A stretch of DNA of 64,000 nt, from assembly GCA_011109175.1 (NCBI GenBank), contig RDEW01000025.1:155990-219989 (forward strand). Reading direction: 5' to 3'. The translations under genes were made by a program, and so were the position numbers. The notes beneath the pieces are model-generated. The model did no database searches, had not been told where the DNA came from, and worked only from the letters and a program-made list of their open reading frames with translations. Shown one piece after another: positions 46,201 through 64,000 of this stretch. How positions within the stretch are numbered: position 1 is the first letter of the stretch; each line of letters starts with the position of its first letter. The DNA is from Dicyema japonicum (taxonomy: Eukaryota; Animalia; Dicyemida).

Positions 46201-46759
46201 GAACCGAATCTGTTATTTATTCGAACAATGTTTGTGTCCTGCCTGGGAGGAGCTATGGCTCTTCGTAAAGTGCAATATGAGATGGGTACAAGGTTAAGTG
46301 AGAGGTATTTATATTATGATTGATTATAGATTAAATCAATTAAAATGTGGACTTCTTCAACAACAGCTTCAAATGAATATTTTGGGAAAATTTTGAATTA
46401 TTTTTTGTGAGTAATGTTTGAATATAACAACACTAACATTTGACCACAAACAAAATCCCATTTTTTCTTTTTATGGGCTATAAATATTATCCAAATGTTT
46501 CTGATGGAGATAGAAAGAACCTTGTGGAAATTTATCACGAACGTGAGGAAGCTCGAGAGAAAACGCGGAAAAAACAAAAGAAGCTGCTGAAATAACGTGC
46601 AAAAAATAAAATGGTCACATGATGAAATTTCACTAAGTATTGGAGAAGTCCACAGTTAAAGTACTGTAGTTTGATTGAGATAGGGCCTGAGCCGACACCT
46701 TTAACAGTCAAGACTTGATGGTTTTTCGTTGAAAGCTCGAACTTTCGTAAATTTCAAGG

Positions 46760-46960
46760 TAAAAAAATACGATAGCCTCTACATAAGATTCCATGTACAC
46801 CCCGTTGTCGTTGAGACGAGCGGAGTCTTCGGCCCCAAGACGGTCTCTTTTCTAAATCGCTTGCGTCAATGACATCGAAAGTGAGTAATAAGCGCCGAGA
46901 AACCGAATGGCTGTTCCAAATGATTTTCCTGAAATCATCAATTTGTGCAGTACGCATAGT
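46760..46960 (+). mobile_element. CRE RLE fragment related to the 58.6-61.6 kb element
   Basis: PVVVETSGVFGPKTVSFL...RRETEWLFQ; DNA close to the reverse complement of 58740-58865. Confidence 0.75.
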
Positions 46961-54660: not shown

Positions 54661-55539
54661 CAACTAGGTGATCTTATCATTTAGTTTTCATGTGGGTCAC
54701 CTACTCGTTAGAAAACTCCCAACATTCGTAAAAAACAAGCACAACCAAATAGTTTGATTGTTAGTAGATGCAGGATAATCTCTGGGAGTGTGCCCTTTTT
54801 GTTCCATATATTTAATTTAATAATAACCCCAGGAACACCGAGAAGAAAGACAAAAGAGTCAAACAGTTAGGTGATCCCAGTCCTCGCAATCAATTGTGCC
54901 ATTCGACGTCTGTGATCTTCCATTGTCCCCACTACCTTCCGGAAAAGCCTTCTCTCGGTCTTGCAGAGGAATCTGATCGGAGAGGAGATTTCTTATCCAA
55001 TCGGTTTTTTCTTGCTACGGAAAGGATCAGGCGAAGCGGGTTTCCATCTTCCTCACAGACGCGAAGAAATCCGGAACCACGACTACGGATCTTAGTTTAT
55101 ATGAGTAGTGGGTCGACTGTTGATCCATTACGTGGGCAAAGCATATTGATTGTTTTCTGATGTATATGAAAATATAACTTTTTATGATATTCAGTAATCA
55201 AACTGAATCACTAAAATTTTTGAATCAATCGTAAAAATGTATTAAATTATAAATGTTTTTATTTTTAATTGTTAATTTATAATCGCATGTAATAACAGCT
55301 GACGTGGGGCAAAAGAGTTAGTTTGAGAAGAGGCAATACCTTTAAATTCCTTCTATTCCGTTCTAGGCAGTCCTCTAAAAAATGAACATTTCTGAAATTT
55401 TTATTGAAAAAATTAAATTTAACAAAAAACGTACAATAAAAAAAATTATCATATTTTAAATTTTGCTTTGATCTGCAGTCAAGAGAAGTATAAAAAAGGC
55501 TATTAATTTTTAAATCGACGCTACTGGACACTTTCAACC

Positions 55540-58044: not shown

Positions 58045-58625
58045 GGTTGACAGTGTCTAGTAGCGCCGATTTAAAACTTAATTGCCTTTTATACTTTTAT
58101 TGACTGCCGATCAAAGTTAAATTAAAAGTATGATAATTTCCCATTGTCCGTTTTTTTGTTAAATTTTATTTTTTTCAATAAAAAATTCAGAAATGTTCAT
58201 TCTTTGAGAGGACTGCTTTGAAAGGAATAGAAGGAATTCAAAGGAATTGCCTCTTCCCAAACTAACTTTTTTGCCCCACGTCAGCTGTTATAACATGCGA
58301 AAATAAATAAACAAATAAAAATAGACTTAGTCTGTCTTTGGAGATTAACTGGACCACCCGTGCTTGTTGATCACCTACACTGGGAGAAGAGAGTCCTATC
58401 AATCACTGAGCATTTGCTGATGCAGTTCTCAAAAGACCTTGATCATTTTTAAACTTTTAGTCAATCAACTATAATATACTTCAAAAATCGATTTACTGGT
58501 TTTCAGGATTATTAACCTAATTGTGTTTCTGTATCCCAGATATATTAAAATATTAATAGCAGGAAAACTACCTTCGCTCACAGAATGTTATCTCAGATAT
58601 CCTATTTAGTACTCCGTCCTAGATA

Positions 58626-61593
58626 TTTTTTTTTTTTTTTTTTTTGAAATCAAGAAATTTATTTATAACAATAAAATCGTTCTAAAGTCCAGCGGATATG
58701 ATCGAGTGGCTGTTACCTCTGACTACTGCCAGGGATATCCTTTGGAAAAGCCACTCGGTTTCCCGACGCTCCCTCGAGGCTTTGGTCAATAGACACCCAA
58801 GTGCTCTAAGGAAAGAGACCGTCTTGGGGCCAAAGACTCCGCTCGTCTCGACGACCACTGGCTGTATATGAAAACGGTTTATGAGGCTGCTGTATTTCTT
58901 TATCTTCGAGTTTTCATATAAACGGGCAGCCTCTCCCGCTTTCATTGCCGACCTCAAAAGTTTCGACTGGGAAAAGCTGTCAGTACAGGCAGCATCCCAA
59001 ATTAAGCATTTGCCCCGAGAGAAGGGGAAGACAGTAATTCCATCGGGTCGCTTCCCATCATCCCTACTCAAGCCCGTTGGCTCTAGAATGGATGGGTATC
59101 CCGCCAACTCGAGGGCGACAATATCGTGGTGTGTGGTGGTGTGGTGTAATTGAGAAAAGAAGATGCACAAGATCGACAAAAGAGAAGAGCTTTGTGAATT
59201 TTGCAATAAAATTAACAAAAGAAAGCGGCTGATATGTTGTGTCGTTTGTTCGTCGTTTTTTCACATGTCATGTGTTGGAATGACCAAAAAGCCCTTACCA
59301 CCATTACCAACTGGTGTTGCCAGGCATGCCTCCTTCCTGGGACGAAAGCACCATCGACTCCACCTAATTCACCTGAACGAATACCAATAGATTACCAGAA
59401 AACCCTTGAATCAATTGCAAACCTGGCATCTACACGAAGGATCATATCAAAATTCCAAAAGCAGCCGTGTTCCTGCCGCCGACTGTTTACACGATTGTAT
59501 TGAAAGGGCAATTTCTTCGACTGACCCAGTTGATTGGACACGATTATTCTACTTTGCACCATACACGCTATGTATGCCCTGTCAGAAGAGGAAAGATCAG
59601 GAATCGCTCACGTCTATTGTAAAGGAAAATATTTGCTTGTTTTTCTTCTGGAAATTTGTTCAGTGACTCCCGAGAATATACCTTCAAGCCCTCAAACCAC
59701 GAGAACCATGCCTCAGAAACACAAAGATTGAGAGAAGAGCGATACATCGCAAACTATCTGAAGGTGGAGTCCGGGCCGCCGTGAGGACTCTAGAAGAGCA
59801 TAACCGTCTAATTGAGCCAACTGAACACTCCTACGATGCACTGGTTGAACGACATCCTGGTCCGCCAGTGGACGAGCAGATCCCTACTTGCTCTGGAGAA
59901 TTACCTAGTCTGATTATTTCTGAGGGGGACGTGAAAGATGCGATCCTCTCATTCGCCCCGAGCAGCAGTGGCGGACTCGACGGACTCCGTCCAGGACACC
60001 TAAAAGACTTAATTGATCAGAATACGGGGAACTCTGGTGTTCGGCTATTATCGGCTATAACGAGGTTAATCAACAGAATGCTTTCCGGAAGATTACCAGA
60101 AGCAATCCGTCATATTATGTTTTCCGCCAAGTTAATTGCCTTTGATAAATGTGGAGGAGGAATTCGTCCTATTGCTGTTGGGTTTGTTTTTCGTCGACTG
60201 GCTTCTAAACTTGCTAGCAGAGCAATCCTTCCGATGCTTGTCAAACAACTGCGACCAACCCAAGTAGGGGTCGGTACTCCTGGTGGATGTGAGGCGGCGG
60301 TTCATGCCGTTCGGATGTTTACTGGAAACAGAACGAACATGCCTTGTGTGGTCCTCAAGATTGACATAAAAAACGCCTTTAATACCATACGGCGCGATGT
60401 AATTTTGGAAGATTGTCTTACCCATTACCCGTCTATATAATTATGTTCATTGTTCGTATGGAAAACCGTCCAGTCTTGTACATGGGAAATACTTCATTCC
60501 CTCGTCATGTGGGGTTCAACAAGGAGACCCACTAGGACCGGCATTGTTCTGCCTCGGTGTCGACCGTGTCATGAGATGCCTTACTACTCCGCTGAACGTG
60601 TGGTATTTGGATGATTGCACCCTGGGAGGTCATCCTAACAATGTATATGACTGTCTACAGAGATTACAAACACAATTGGATACGCTTGGTTTAAAGCTAA
60701 ACGCAGCCAAATGCGAAATTGTTAATTATGGATTCTCCCGATATGAATGGAATCGGATCCTATTACAGTTTCGGGGGATTATTCCTAAAATATCGGAAAT
60801 CAAGCCGGATCATTTGGAAATACTTGGATGCCCTCTGGCTGAAACTGGAATTAACGACACTCTGTTTGGCTAAAGAACAGAAACTAAGAAAAACTTTTTT
60901 ACGCCTTGGGATGCTGGATGCACATACCTCTCTTTTTCTCATGAAAAACGCTTTATCCACGCAGAAATTAAATTACGTCCTTCGAGGGGCTCCATGTTAC
61001 CTGAAAATGCAACAACTCGGGGCGATTGACTCCCTATTCCGGTCTACAACCGAACGTATTACTAATGTCGAATTCGACGAACAAGGATGGGAACAAGCAA
61101 CCTTGCCCGTTCGCTTTGGTGGACTCGGAATTCTCTCACCATCTGATTTGGCACACCCGGCATATCAATCCTCATTGGACTCCAATCAGAATTTGATCAT
61201 GATGATTCTCCAGCTCCCATCAGAGTCGTCAAAGATCGAAGATTTGGTACACCCTAAAGTCAAACAACTCGGCAGAGAGACCTTTATGAGTCTGTTTGCG
61301 AGGATAAATACGAGAGGCTTTTGAAAATATCTAACCAACACCGACGAGCCTGTTTTTAACTGCAAGATGCGAGTGGAGCGGGGCTTGGATCAATGCCCTA
61401 CCAATTGGAAACGTGGCGAACTCACCTAGACGAGGAAACGGTCCGCACCGGAGTCTCCATCAGACTTGGATTGAAGGTTTGTCAACCCCATGAGTGCCGA
61501 TGCGGCCGGAAGGTCGACTGCTATGGACATCATGCCCTTTCTTGTCGAAAAAGCGCAGGTCGATTCGCTAGACACAAGGCTATAAATGAAGTG
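58626..61593 (-). mobile_element. Near-full-length CRE-clade RLE retrotransposon with internal 5' inversion, poly(A) and 12-bp TSD
   Basis: T20 at 58626-58645; RLE on the minus strand (KRPDG, WDAAC, VVVETSG, ISLAVVRGNS); PHD + RT (GIRPIAVG, DIKNAFN, GVQQGDPLGP, WYLDD) + CCHC on the plus strand 59163-61593; gtcctagatatt at 58616-58627 and 61594-61605. Confidence 0.92.
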
Positions 61594-61769
61594 GTCCTAG
61601 ATATTATTTCCGATTCATCCGTATTACCTTTAAACTTTTAAAACGCTTGATAGAATAGCAAAAAAAGTTATTAGTAGGGCGATTTTTATTTTAACTCTTG
61701 AGCGCTGCTGGTTATTTGAGCGAATCACATATTACTATAATTAAAAATTTGGGCCTAAAATAAGCAATT

Positions 61770-64000
61770 TTCTGAGTTTCTTTAGGAACGTATTATTAGT
61801 ATTTAACCTCACTTGCCCGGACATTTTTGGGGTACGTATTTGCACATGTGTGCAACCCCTTATAGTCTTTAAGACGTGACCTTCAATGATAATTTCGAAA
61901 ACTTTCAACTTTATCAATTGCTGTAAAACTTTCAACTTCTAGCCATTTCTGTAAAGCAGCAATTCATACTGTGCGGACTTTTTTACAACATAGCAAAAGT
62001 ATCCCATATGTGTCTTAAGATCGATATCAAAAATAACTTTAATGCCATACATCATTATGTAATCCTGGAGGATTGATCTAGTCAGTGGAGAAAAGTACTC
62101 AATAAACGAAAGATTTAATTTTATATAAAAATGTTGGCTTTGATAACTGACAAAAATGGGACACCTTGAAAACGGTTTTCATTTTTCTGAAGAGAGACGA
62201 AAGTTTTAATTTTGTCTTAAACCATGTTGGGCGTGGTAAGGGACAAATACGAAGAGAATAAAACATCAACTTAACCGTTTCCTCTTGTGGCTGAACGAAA
62301 CCACTAACAATTAGACCTATTTGAGTTCAAATGAATTTTGACCAATTTGACACTACTCAAAATTTATATGCCCTACTCATCAGAGTAAAGGAGAAGATCA
62401 TTAAACTTCTAATCAAATCAATAATTGAAAAAATATTTGACCGCTTAATGACACGTGTTGTGTGATTTGTATTCCTCTTTCTTTCTTCAAGTGGTGTAAT
62501 CGGATCCACATGGTGCAAATTGAATTGAAAGATTGGTAGGGAAAAGGAAATTCCTGGCACAGAAGGTGAAATTACAAGTGGTAATTCATTATTAGAGTAA
62601 TTCACGTATCATTAGATTGACCAANCCTGGCACAGGTGAAATTACAAGTGGTAGTTGATTATTAGAGGAATTCACGTATCATTAGATTTACCAAGTAGCT
62701 CAATAGGGAATTACTAAAAAAACTCTTAACGAATCTTTTATGAGATGAACCACCCTTATGTTAAAGTCCTGCTCAAAAATAAGACCCGTGATTCAGAAGC
62801 AATTGATAAATATTTTGAAGTTTGGAATAAAGACAATTCGTGAATTTGTGTATCAAAAGGGTATTCGGGTAGATTAGCGCAAATTGTATTAAATGCGTTC
62901 TATTAATACATATCAGAGAAAAAACCCGATTATTAAAAACGGTTACCTTACGTGAAAAGTTGGATGAATAAATTATATATCGTGCTCTTGAAAATCGTTA
63001 CAATAGGTTTATGTGGCAGTATAATTCTCCACTGGTGAAATAAAACCTAACCGTGGTCCCTCTAGGAGATAAATCGGACATCCTGATCTGGCTATGCAAG
63101 CCCTCTGGGAGTATTGCCATCTGATGAGGAGAATTATTATACCATCATGTGGTATCAGATATTTTGTCTTCCAATAGTTTTTCATCGATGGCTACCGTTT
63201 GTATAGTTTCTATGCGTTGATAGATTAAAGATTTTTTTCAAGGAGCACGTTAAGGATTGCCACGAGGCTTGCTTAGATGCTGAGACGGATAGATATGTTA
63301 TTTTATCAGATATCTTGAGGATAAAGATCAGTTGGGAGATATGAATTTTAAAATAACAGATACCCAAAAGGGAATTACTGCTTGCCAAATTGATATGAAA
63401 ATAGAAAGGATCCTTTATGAAATCTCGGAGGTAGCATGAGGAAAGTGAGGAAGTAATGAAGCCTTGATCGCTTATTATTGCCACTGGATCTTTTGCTAAA
63501 TCGTCTGAAAAGCAACTCTAAGGAAGGAGGATTTGGCTTGTGACGTTTATAATGTGCTTTTCTATCGAAGACAGGAGGTGGCAGCGGTGGGGAGGAGAGG
63601 ATAGTGCGACGGAGGAAGCGAGTAATTGGGCCAATATTTTTAGTTAAGTCTACCCAATGGTGCGCAGAAATTATATGTATAATTCCAAGATTATGCAAAG
63701 GATGTGATTGAAAATATAACCTTACTATGGAATACGGAGGTGCTGGAATGGTCGGCCAAGAATCCTAAACCGATGTAGCGGTGATGAATAATGTTACCAA
63801 NTCTGAGTTTCTTTAGGAAACGTATTATTAGTATTTAACCTCACTTTCCCGGACATTTTTGGGGTACGTATTCGCACATGTGTGCAACCCCTTTAGCACT
63901 TACTGTTATAGTCTTTAAGACGTGACCTTCAATGATATTTTCAATAACTTTCAACTTTATCAATTGCCGTAAAAATTTCAACTTTTAGCCATGTCTGTAA
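61770..64000 (-). mobile_element. Fragmented Helitron Rep remnant
   Basis: LPPLPPP-like, YFKIH, TICANLPE...IHEL, ISPS...IFQFNLH and KGCTH.RIRT segments loosely match Helitron Rep motifs; very degenerate. Confidence 0.5.

Follow-up and report, generated by a model that had tools for sequence, protein, structure and literature searches.

Roughly a fifth of human L1 copies carry a 5' inversion. The twin-priming account of these inversions goes back to Ostertag and Kazazian (2001), as cited in PMC4245944 and PMC6895275, and a relation between L1 twin priming and second-strand synthesis has been raised in a speculative remark (PMC6895275). In human cells, such inversions were found almost exclusively for L1, with a single Nimb-2_DR case and none for ZfL2-1 (PMC4245944). 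For retrotransposons with a restriction-like endonuclease (RLE), the accepted model derives from R2 and places top-strand cleavage after first-strand synthesis (PMC6895275, PMC11371274), and R2-driven transgene insertion (PRINT) yields snap-back 5' junctions, not twin priming (PMC11371274). Here we describe an RLE-type element at positions 58616-61605 of a 64,000-nucleotide stretch of Dicyema japonicum contig RDEW01000025.1 (hereafter the window). Its structure is probably the product of a single retrotransposition event in which reverse transcription of one RNA started at both cut ends of the target, that is, of twin priming.

The element, which lies at C168:214605-217594 in the assembly contig numbering used for searches, consists of two parts in opposite orientation. 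Element positions are given throughout as part A (window 59118-61593, plus strand, 2476 nt) and part B (the reverse complement of 58628-59117, 490 nt including the tail). The features of the insertion are as follows:

58616-58627, no strand: left copy of the 12-bp target-site duplication GTCCTAGATATT, the single 12-mer of the paralogous empty sites
58628-58645, minus strand: poly(A) tail of 18 A (a T run on the plus strand), abutting the left duplication
58628-59117, minus strand: direct 3' segment B, 490 nt, with the 3' untranslated region (UTR) and the C-terminal RLE coding sequence from ...ALELAGYPS, including conserved PD-(D/E)xK motifs
59117-59118, no strand: inner junction of the 5'-most base of B with the element 5' end, with neither filler nor microhomology
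59118-61595, plus strand: inverted 5' segment A, 2476-2478 nt, with the 5' UTR, PHD, reverse transcriptase and CCHC regions, to ...RHKAINEVV
59193-59294, plus strand: PHD finger (PF00628, E 1.8e-7)
60147-60831, plus strand: reverse transcriptase domain over two frames (RVT_1)
61480-61545, plus strand: CCHC zinc knuckle N-terminal to the nuclease, from the translation; its Cys/His columns are invariant in the family alignment
61594-61595, no strand: GT common to the element (GTGAAGCG) and the target (GTCCTA...), a 2-nt microhomology at the presumed internal priming site
61594-61605, no strand: right copy of the 12-bp duplication GTCCTAGATATT

Read on the minus strand, the order is thus duplication, antisense A (running from its 3'-most base to the element 5' end), sense B, poly(A) and duplication. 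The minus-strand open reading frame (ORF) at 58682-59218 carries the C-terminal part of the protein, and the plus-strand ORFs from 59163 onwards carry the PHD finger and pieces of the reverse transcriptase. Several frameshifts break the plus-strand reading frame, so the window copy is dead. A sequence-only reading of the window had described a 12-bp direct repeat bracketing the element, with the poly(A) and RLE part on the minus strand and the PHD, reverse transcriptase and CCHC part on the plus strand, and this description holds: the repeat occurs singly in empty sites, the tail is present as an 18-nt T run beside a segment whose motifs are conserved, and the plus-strand domains are recognised in ORF translations and by Pfam matches. 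The same reading was right in placing the element 5' end at the inner junction, as segment A starts within ~10 nt of the start of full-length copies (...CGTGGTGTGTGG), and in taking the inverted segment to be essentially the whole 5' 2.5 kb. It had also proposed a gtc(c) microhomology with the target. Here it went too far, since the element continues GTGAAG while the target continues GTCCTA, so that GT alone is shared.

Variable extra letters are present at the 5' junctions of several copies (window 59118-59126; L002 1462-1500; L003 1480-1500; L006 and L007 ~1490-1505). Several of these look like the 3' tail of the element in reverse complement (TTTATAACAATAAAAT compared with the tail sequence ATTTTATTGTTATAAA); they would represent a short terminal inverted repeat or, alternatively, filler templated by the tail when the 5' end was joined.

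The source genome (67.5 Mb, 377 contigs) was searched with 58616-61605 as the query. The search for an empty site with a single repeat copy, which the sequence-only reading had proposed as a check, gave two paralogous sites whose alignments run across the joined flanks: C312:1985672-1986484, with 96% identity over 412 bp, and C168:71940-72415, with 90% identity. Both read TACTCC-GTCCTAGATATT-ATTTCC, with the 12-mer present once. The 12 bp therefore represent a true target-site duplication, and the whole 2966-nt structure between the two copies is one insertion. Such sites are available because the insertion lies inside a multi-copy repeat. This repeat (window 58216-58615 and 61606-62000) has at least three genome copies, including those on C312 (96%) and at C168:72k (90%), and also occurs at window 55260-55363 and 63802-64000.

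The empty sites also bear on the possibility of an assembly artefact, either a repeat-induced misjoin or a fold-back chimeric read. The junctions of the window are not bridged by any Logan contig listed, and the family comprises more than 60 near-identical copies, both of which would suit such an error. However, internal position A2476 abuts the second copy of a 12-mer that is found once in the empty sites, an arrangement that a misjoin would not make, and fold-back chimeras give palindromes rather than two complementary, non-overlapping parts. We regard an artefact as very unlikely.

More than 45 copies of the family at 97-99% identity were found in the genome with the window element as the query, and these natural copies served as the reference for the breakpoints. 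In all 26 copies that span the point (26/26), A is followed by B on one strand. The canonical junction reads ...AATGAAGTG-GTGAAGCG-CGCCCTCGAG... (GTAAGCG in one copy), or ...NEVV-[KR]-ALELAG... in protein terms, whereas in the window ...AATGAAGTG runs straight into GTCCTAGATATT. The window copy has thus lost 6-8 nt at the breakpoint, namely GAAGCG only, or GTGAAGCG if GT is counted as target, and the two parts are near-contiguous in the family, as had been supposed from the window alone. The canonical junction (59117 to 61595 on opposite strands, with GAAGCG between them) is also present in Logan contigs from four runs of two studies. No joint skipping the element was found among the Logan contigs listed.

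To map the layout genome-wide, six sequence markers along the element were located and mixed-strand clusters were mapped, together with the loci from the whole-element query. Marker counts increase along the element (26 at A47, close to its 5' end; 62 at B1; 132 at B305), as is usual with 5' truncation. The layout expected of twin priming occurs in 12 copies, the window and 11 others at different sites with different breakpoints. Compared with the ~64 copies in which the B1 region is retained, with 0.5 kb or more of 3' sequence, this amounts to ~19%. Both the twin-priming geometry and the genome-wide count of inverted copies had been put forward in the sequence-only reading, and the geometry recurs in the eleven further copies. 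The copies are listed below with the internal priming point (p), the first complementary DNA (cDNA) end (r), the gap or overlap between the two in nt, the 5' limit of the inverted part (s) and the duplication:

Window: p A2476-8, r B1, gap 6-8, s A1; duplication of 12 bp, microhomology GT
L045 (C314): p A2468, r A2461, overlap 8, s A1782; duplication ATAAGCAA(TT), microhomology ATAA
L009 (C24:346k): p A2463, r A2390, overlap 74, s A14; duplication AATCGTTAGT
L019 (C339): p B13, r A2444, overlap 54, s A249; duplication GTTGTATAA, microhomology GTTG
L012 (C319): p B186, r B74, overlap 113, s A9; duplication TTACACGTTT
L016 (C190): p B189, r B235, gap 45, s A15; no duplication seen
L046 (C334): p B210, r B167, overlap 44, s A2420; weak duplication
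L042 (C46): p B224, r B203, overlap 22, s A2027; duplication about TATTATA
L041 (C24:376k): p B319, r B294, overlap 26, s A1913; weak, low-complexity duplication
L025 (C112): p B310, r B287, overlap 24, s A422; complex copy without a clean assignment
L002 (C201): p B358, r B437, gap 78, s A8; duplication GAATGAAAT
L003 (C372): p about B471, r B432, overlap about 40, s A3; duplication TTTAACTATATT

Across the 12 copies, the two breakpoints are strongly correlated (correlation coefficient 0.96, permutation p = 1e-5), and the gap or overlap is at most 113 nt in every case (12/12), which would be expected with a chance of ~4e-14 if the breakpoints were unrelated. Clear duplications of ~7-12 bp flank seven of the 11 further copies (L009, L019, L012, L003, L002, L045 and L042). 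In this small sample, the microhomology where the inverted part meets the target amounts to 2 nt for the window and to 0-4 nt for the remaining copies. Inversion points cluster in the last ~500 nt of the element, and the inverted cDNA reached the RNA 5' end in half of the cases.

This regularity leaves little room for the independent insertion of two copies side by side, one short, 5'-truncated and in minus orientation, the other 3'-truncated and in plus orientation. Nested or adjacent copies do occur in the genome (L026, L043), but target-primed copies are not 3'-truncated, the two parts in the window together make up a 2970-nt element but for 6-8 nt, a single duplication surrounds both, and 12 such pairs would all have to fall within 113 nt by chance (again ~4e-14). 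An origin by two insertions is barely credible. A second alternative is cDNA snap-back, in which the 3' end of the first cDNA folds and copies itself, leaving antisense element sequence beside the upstream target. Products of this kind have been reported from human cells for an RLE element (PMC11371274), and two genome copies have the corresponding geometry: L044, with direct B127-485 and inverted B232-372, and L049, with a direct part from A1425 and inverted A2085-2351. Snap-back can, however, duplicate only what the first cDNA contains, and the inverted 2476 nt of the window are absent from its 490-nt direct part, as is likewise the case in the eleven other copies. The first cDNA could not have been the template for the inverted part, since all of this is located 5' of the direct part. 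Snap-back is thus highly improbable for the window, where it was rejected on the anatomy, the two parts sharing nothing, and it remains only for L044 and L049. The first of these (C113:310249-310757) is flanked by a 15-bp duplication, TTTTACATTTATTTT; the second lies at C323:1200208-1201960.

Some other copies have departures of a different kind. L043 (C60) is too complex for a clean assignment. L047 (C32:21237-21878) carries an internal deletion on one strand, with A5-364 joined to B169-430, and is a possible non-autonomous derivative. At L050 (C369:44268-45355) and L026 (C323:322543-323033), internal pieces (A1519-2205) and partial 3' ends of the family are arranged in tandem.

The geometry of the insertion agrees with twin priming in every predicted respect: the duplication flanks the whole structure, the poly(A) tail abuts one of its copies and an internal element position abuts the other, the two parts are neighbours in the source RNA apart from the lost 6-8 nt, and the inner junction is made by the element 5' end. 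In the proposed sequence of events, a bottom-strand nick would prime on the poly(A) tail to give a first cDNA of ~490 nt, which we take segment B (58628-59117, minus strand) to represent. The top strand would be cut 12 bp away before this cDNA was finished, and its 3' end (...CTAGGAC, minus strand) would form 2 base pairs with the RNA at a point immediately upstream of the first-cDNA tip. A second cDNA primed there would be extended to the RNA 5' end (59118-61595), and the two cDNA tips would then be joined without homology, with the loss of 6-8 nt. The anatomy, the duplication, the empty site, the canonical adjacency and the recurrence are direct observations on the genome, whereas the order of the cuts, the priming from the top strand and the use of one RNA rather than two are what we infer from them.

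Several points weigh against this account. The microhomology in the window is only 2 nt. None of the Logan contigs listed bridges the window's own junctions; they are interrupted at the edges of the repeat. Duplications are weak and of low complexity at L041 and L046, and at L016 none is visible. Early top-strand cleavage by an RLE would depart from the order of events in the accepted R2 model. For this single full-length copy, a later inversion of the 5' part in place would look identical. In this last case a canonical full-length insertion would have been rearranged by inversion of its 5' 2.48 kb, with breaks at the border of element and duplication and within the nuclease coding sequence. 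The presence of neither filler nor homology at 59117/59118 agrees with such an event, and for the window copy alone the end product is the same. However, one break would have to fall exactly on the border between element and target, here and again in the eleven other copies. Many of those copies, in addition, have inverted overlaps of 22-113 nt or inverted parts that are 5'-truncated, neither of which a simple inversion after insertion could produce. Rearrangement after insertion is accordingly rated as quite unlikely. Twin priming remains the preferred account of the window. For the family, we lean towards the view that, in a natural RLE-type long interspersed nuclear element (LINE), the top strand is cut and primes reverse transcription on the RNA when the first cDNA is 50-600 nt long, and that this happens in about one in five insertions.

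The type of the element was assessed from protein profiles and predicted structures. RVT_1 is matched at E 7e-20 in the ORFs of L003 and L004, and PHD at E 3e-6 in the longer ORFs of other copies. The apurinic/apyrimidinic endonuclease (APE) domain Exo_endo_phos gave no match at E <=0.1 in the 765-aa N-terminal ORF, while an APE family of the same genome scores clearly. The family profile matches R2 at E 9e-20 and L1 ORF2p at E 5e-9, and the motifs C..C..H..C and RPDG...WDA..D...K...E are invariant or nearly so over 27 relatives in the family alignment. A model of a 704-aa ORF (predicted local distance difference test score, pLDDT, 88) gave its best alignment with R2 proteins, covering residues 12-704 (Z 24.1, 632 residues). 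Similarly, a model of the last 210 aa (pLDDT 86) had R2 proteins as all of its top seven matches (E 1.8e-6 to 1.5e-4), followed only by other PD-(D/E)xK nucleases; the nuclease itself has no Pfam model. No intact ORF was found among 30 loci. Because the protein combines PHD, reverse transcriptase, CCHC and PD-(D/E)xK regions, has R2 as its best fold match and gave no match to the APE domain, the element is, on profile and modelled fold, an RLE-type non-long terminal repeat retrotransposon of the R2 group.

The sequence-only reading had called the element a CRE-clade RLE retrotransposon; the RLE type stands, and the only pointer to CRE is a barnacle protein (P0024) with 44% identity that its source named after SLACS. 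CRE members are mostly site-specific, and the HERO clade includes many non-specific families (PMC4640811). The present copies are dispersed over more than 50 contigs with unrelated, A/T-rich duplications (7-15 bp in canonical copies), which argues against CRE-type insertion at specific sites such as spliced-leader genes or telomeres. The HERO clade would fit this dispersed insertion at least as well as CRE. Relatives are numerous in animal genomes and metagenomes, many of them with PHD or ubiquitin-hydrolase N-termini. The nearest named proteins to the ORF at L004:2318-4429 are two 'uncharacterized proteins' of Octopus sinensis (66% and 56%), with others at <=48%; if the genome is that of an octopus parasite, this similarity hints at host-parasite transfer or cross-contamination.

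Two variants of the 3' tail were observed, one ending in ...TTTAGAACGATTTTATTG... followed by poly(A) and the other, which lacks an extended A run, in ...CAGTAATTAACTACTCATG...AATAATAAA. For some insertions (L012, L002) the start lies inside the tail and poly(A) is absent. The stretch at 46760-46960, named in the sequence-only reading as another copy, does match B212-306 at 81% over 46756-46850, but as an older fragment of a related family.

The APE-type family of the same genome (Exo_endo_phos and RVT_1, ~3.24 kb) is young and very abundant, with copies 99% identical and more than 1200 first-look APE-domain candidates genome-wide. In a quick look at 46 of its matches, one odd opposite-strand adjacency was seen (C337:13269-14956, with 1.5 kb missing), and four 3'-truncated pieces had no 3' marker beside them. 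Few if any inversions of the twin-priming type are thus present among these 46 matches. On this restricted comparison with one APE-type family, the tendency to invert appears more pronounced in the RLE family, and the effect looks family-specific.

The sequence-only reading knew of no precedent in an RLE-type element, and the literature searched, the coverage of which was incomplete, yielded no account of twin priming in any natural RLE family. The event itself is of a known type, here in an element class where it was not known before, and it is recurrent enough to bear on RLE integration. If the interpretation is correct, the scheme drawn from R2, in which the first strand is finished before the second cut, would fail for some RLE elements, and twin priming would belong to LINE integration in general instead of being a peculiarity of L1, of APE-type elements or of human cells. 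The second half of RLE-LINE integration is poorly understood, and the twelve inversions, many of them flanked by duplications, provide natural evidence on it, bearing on the timing of the top-strand cut and on what primes from it. The inversions also supply a data set of breakpoints, overlaps and microhomologies for testing integration models, and are relevant to R2-based gene-insertion tools, in which inverted by-products are unwanted.

Among known systems, the RLE clades CRE and HERO share with this element a single ORF with reverse transcriptase, CCHC and RLE regions. The R2 protein (PDB 9nl2, 8gh6, 8ibw) aligns from the reverse transcriptase through the C-terminal nuclease and is the best match of the C-terminal 210 aa. 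Sequence identity is, however, 17-18%, and R2 has a zinc-finger/Myb N-terminus in place of the PHD finger; insertion here is not specific for ribosomal DNA, with duplications of 7-15 bp and a poly(A) or A-rich tail. The likeness to human L1 lies in the product: a duplication around the whole insert, a direct 3' part with poly(A) and an inverted 5' part, a small deletion or duplication at the inversion point, internal-priming microhomology of 0-4 nt in a small sample, duplications of ~7-12 bp and about a fifth of copies affected. The enzymes differ, with a C-terminal PD-(D/E)xK restriction-like nuclease here and an N-terminal APE in L1. The snap-back junctions of R2-driven insertion (PRINT) likewise come from an RLE-type element and place antisense element sequence against the upstream target, and L044 and L049 fit this pattern. 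In the window and the eleven other copies, in contrast, the sequence of the inverted part is missing from the direct part, and a second reverse transcription of the RNA is therefore needed.

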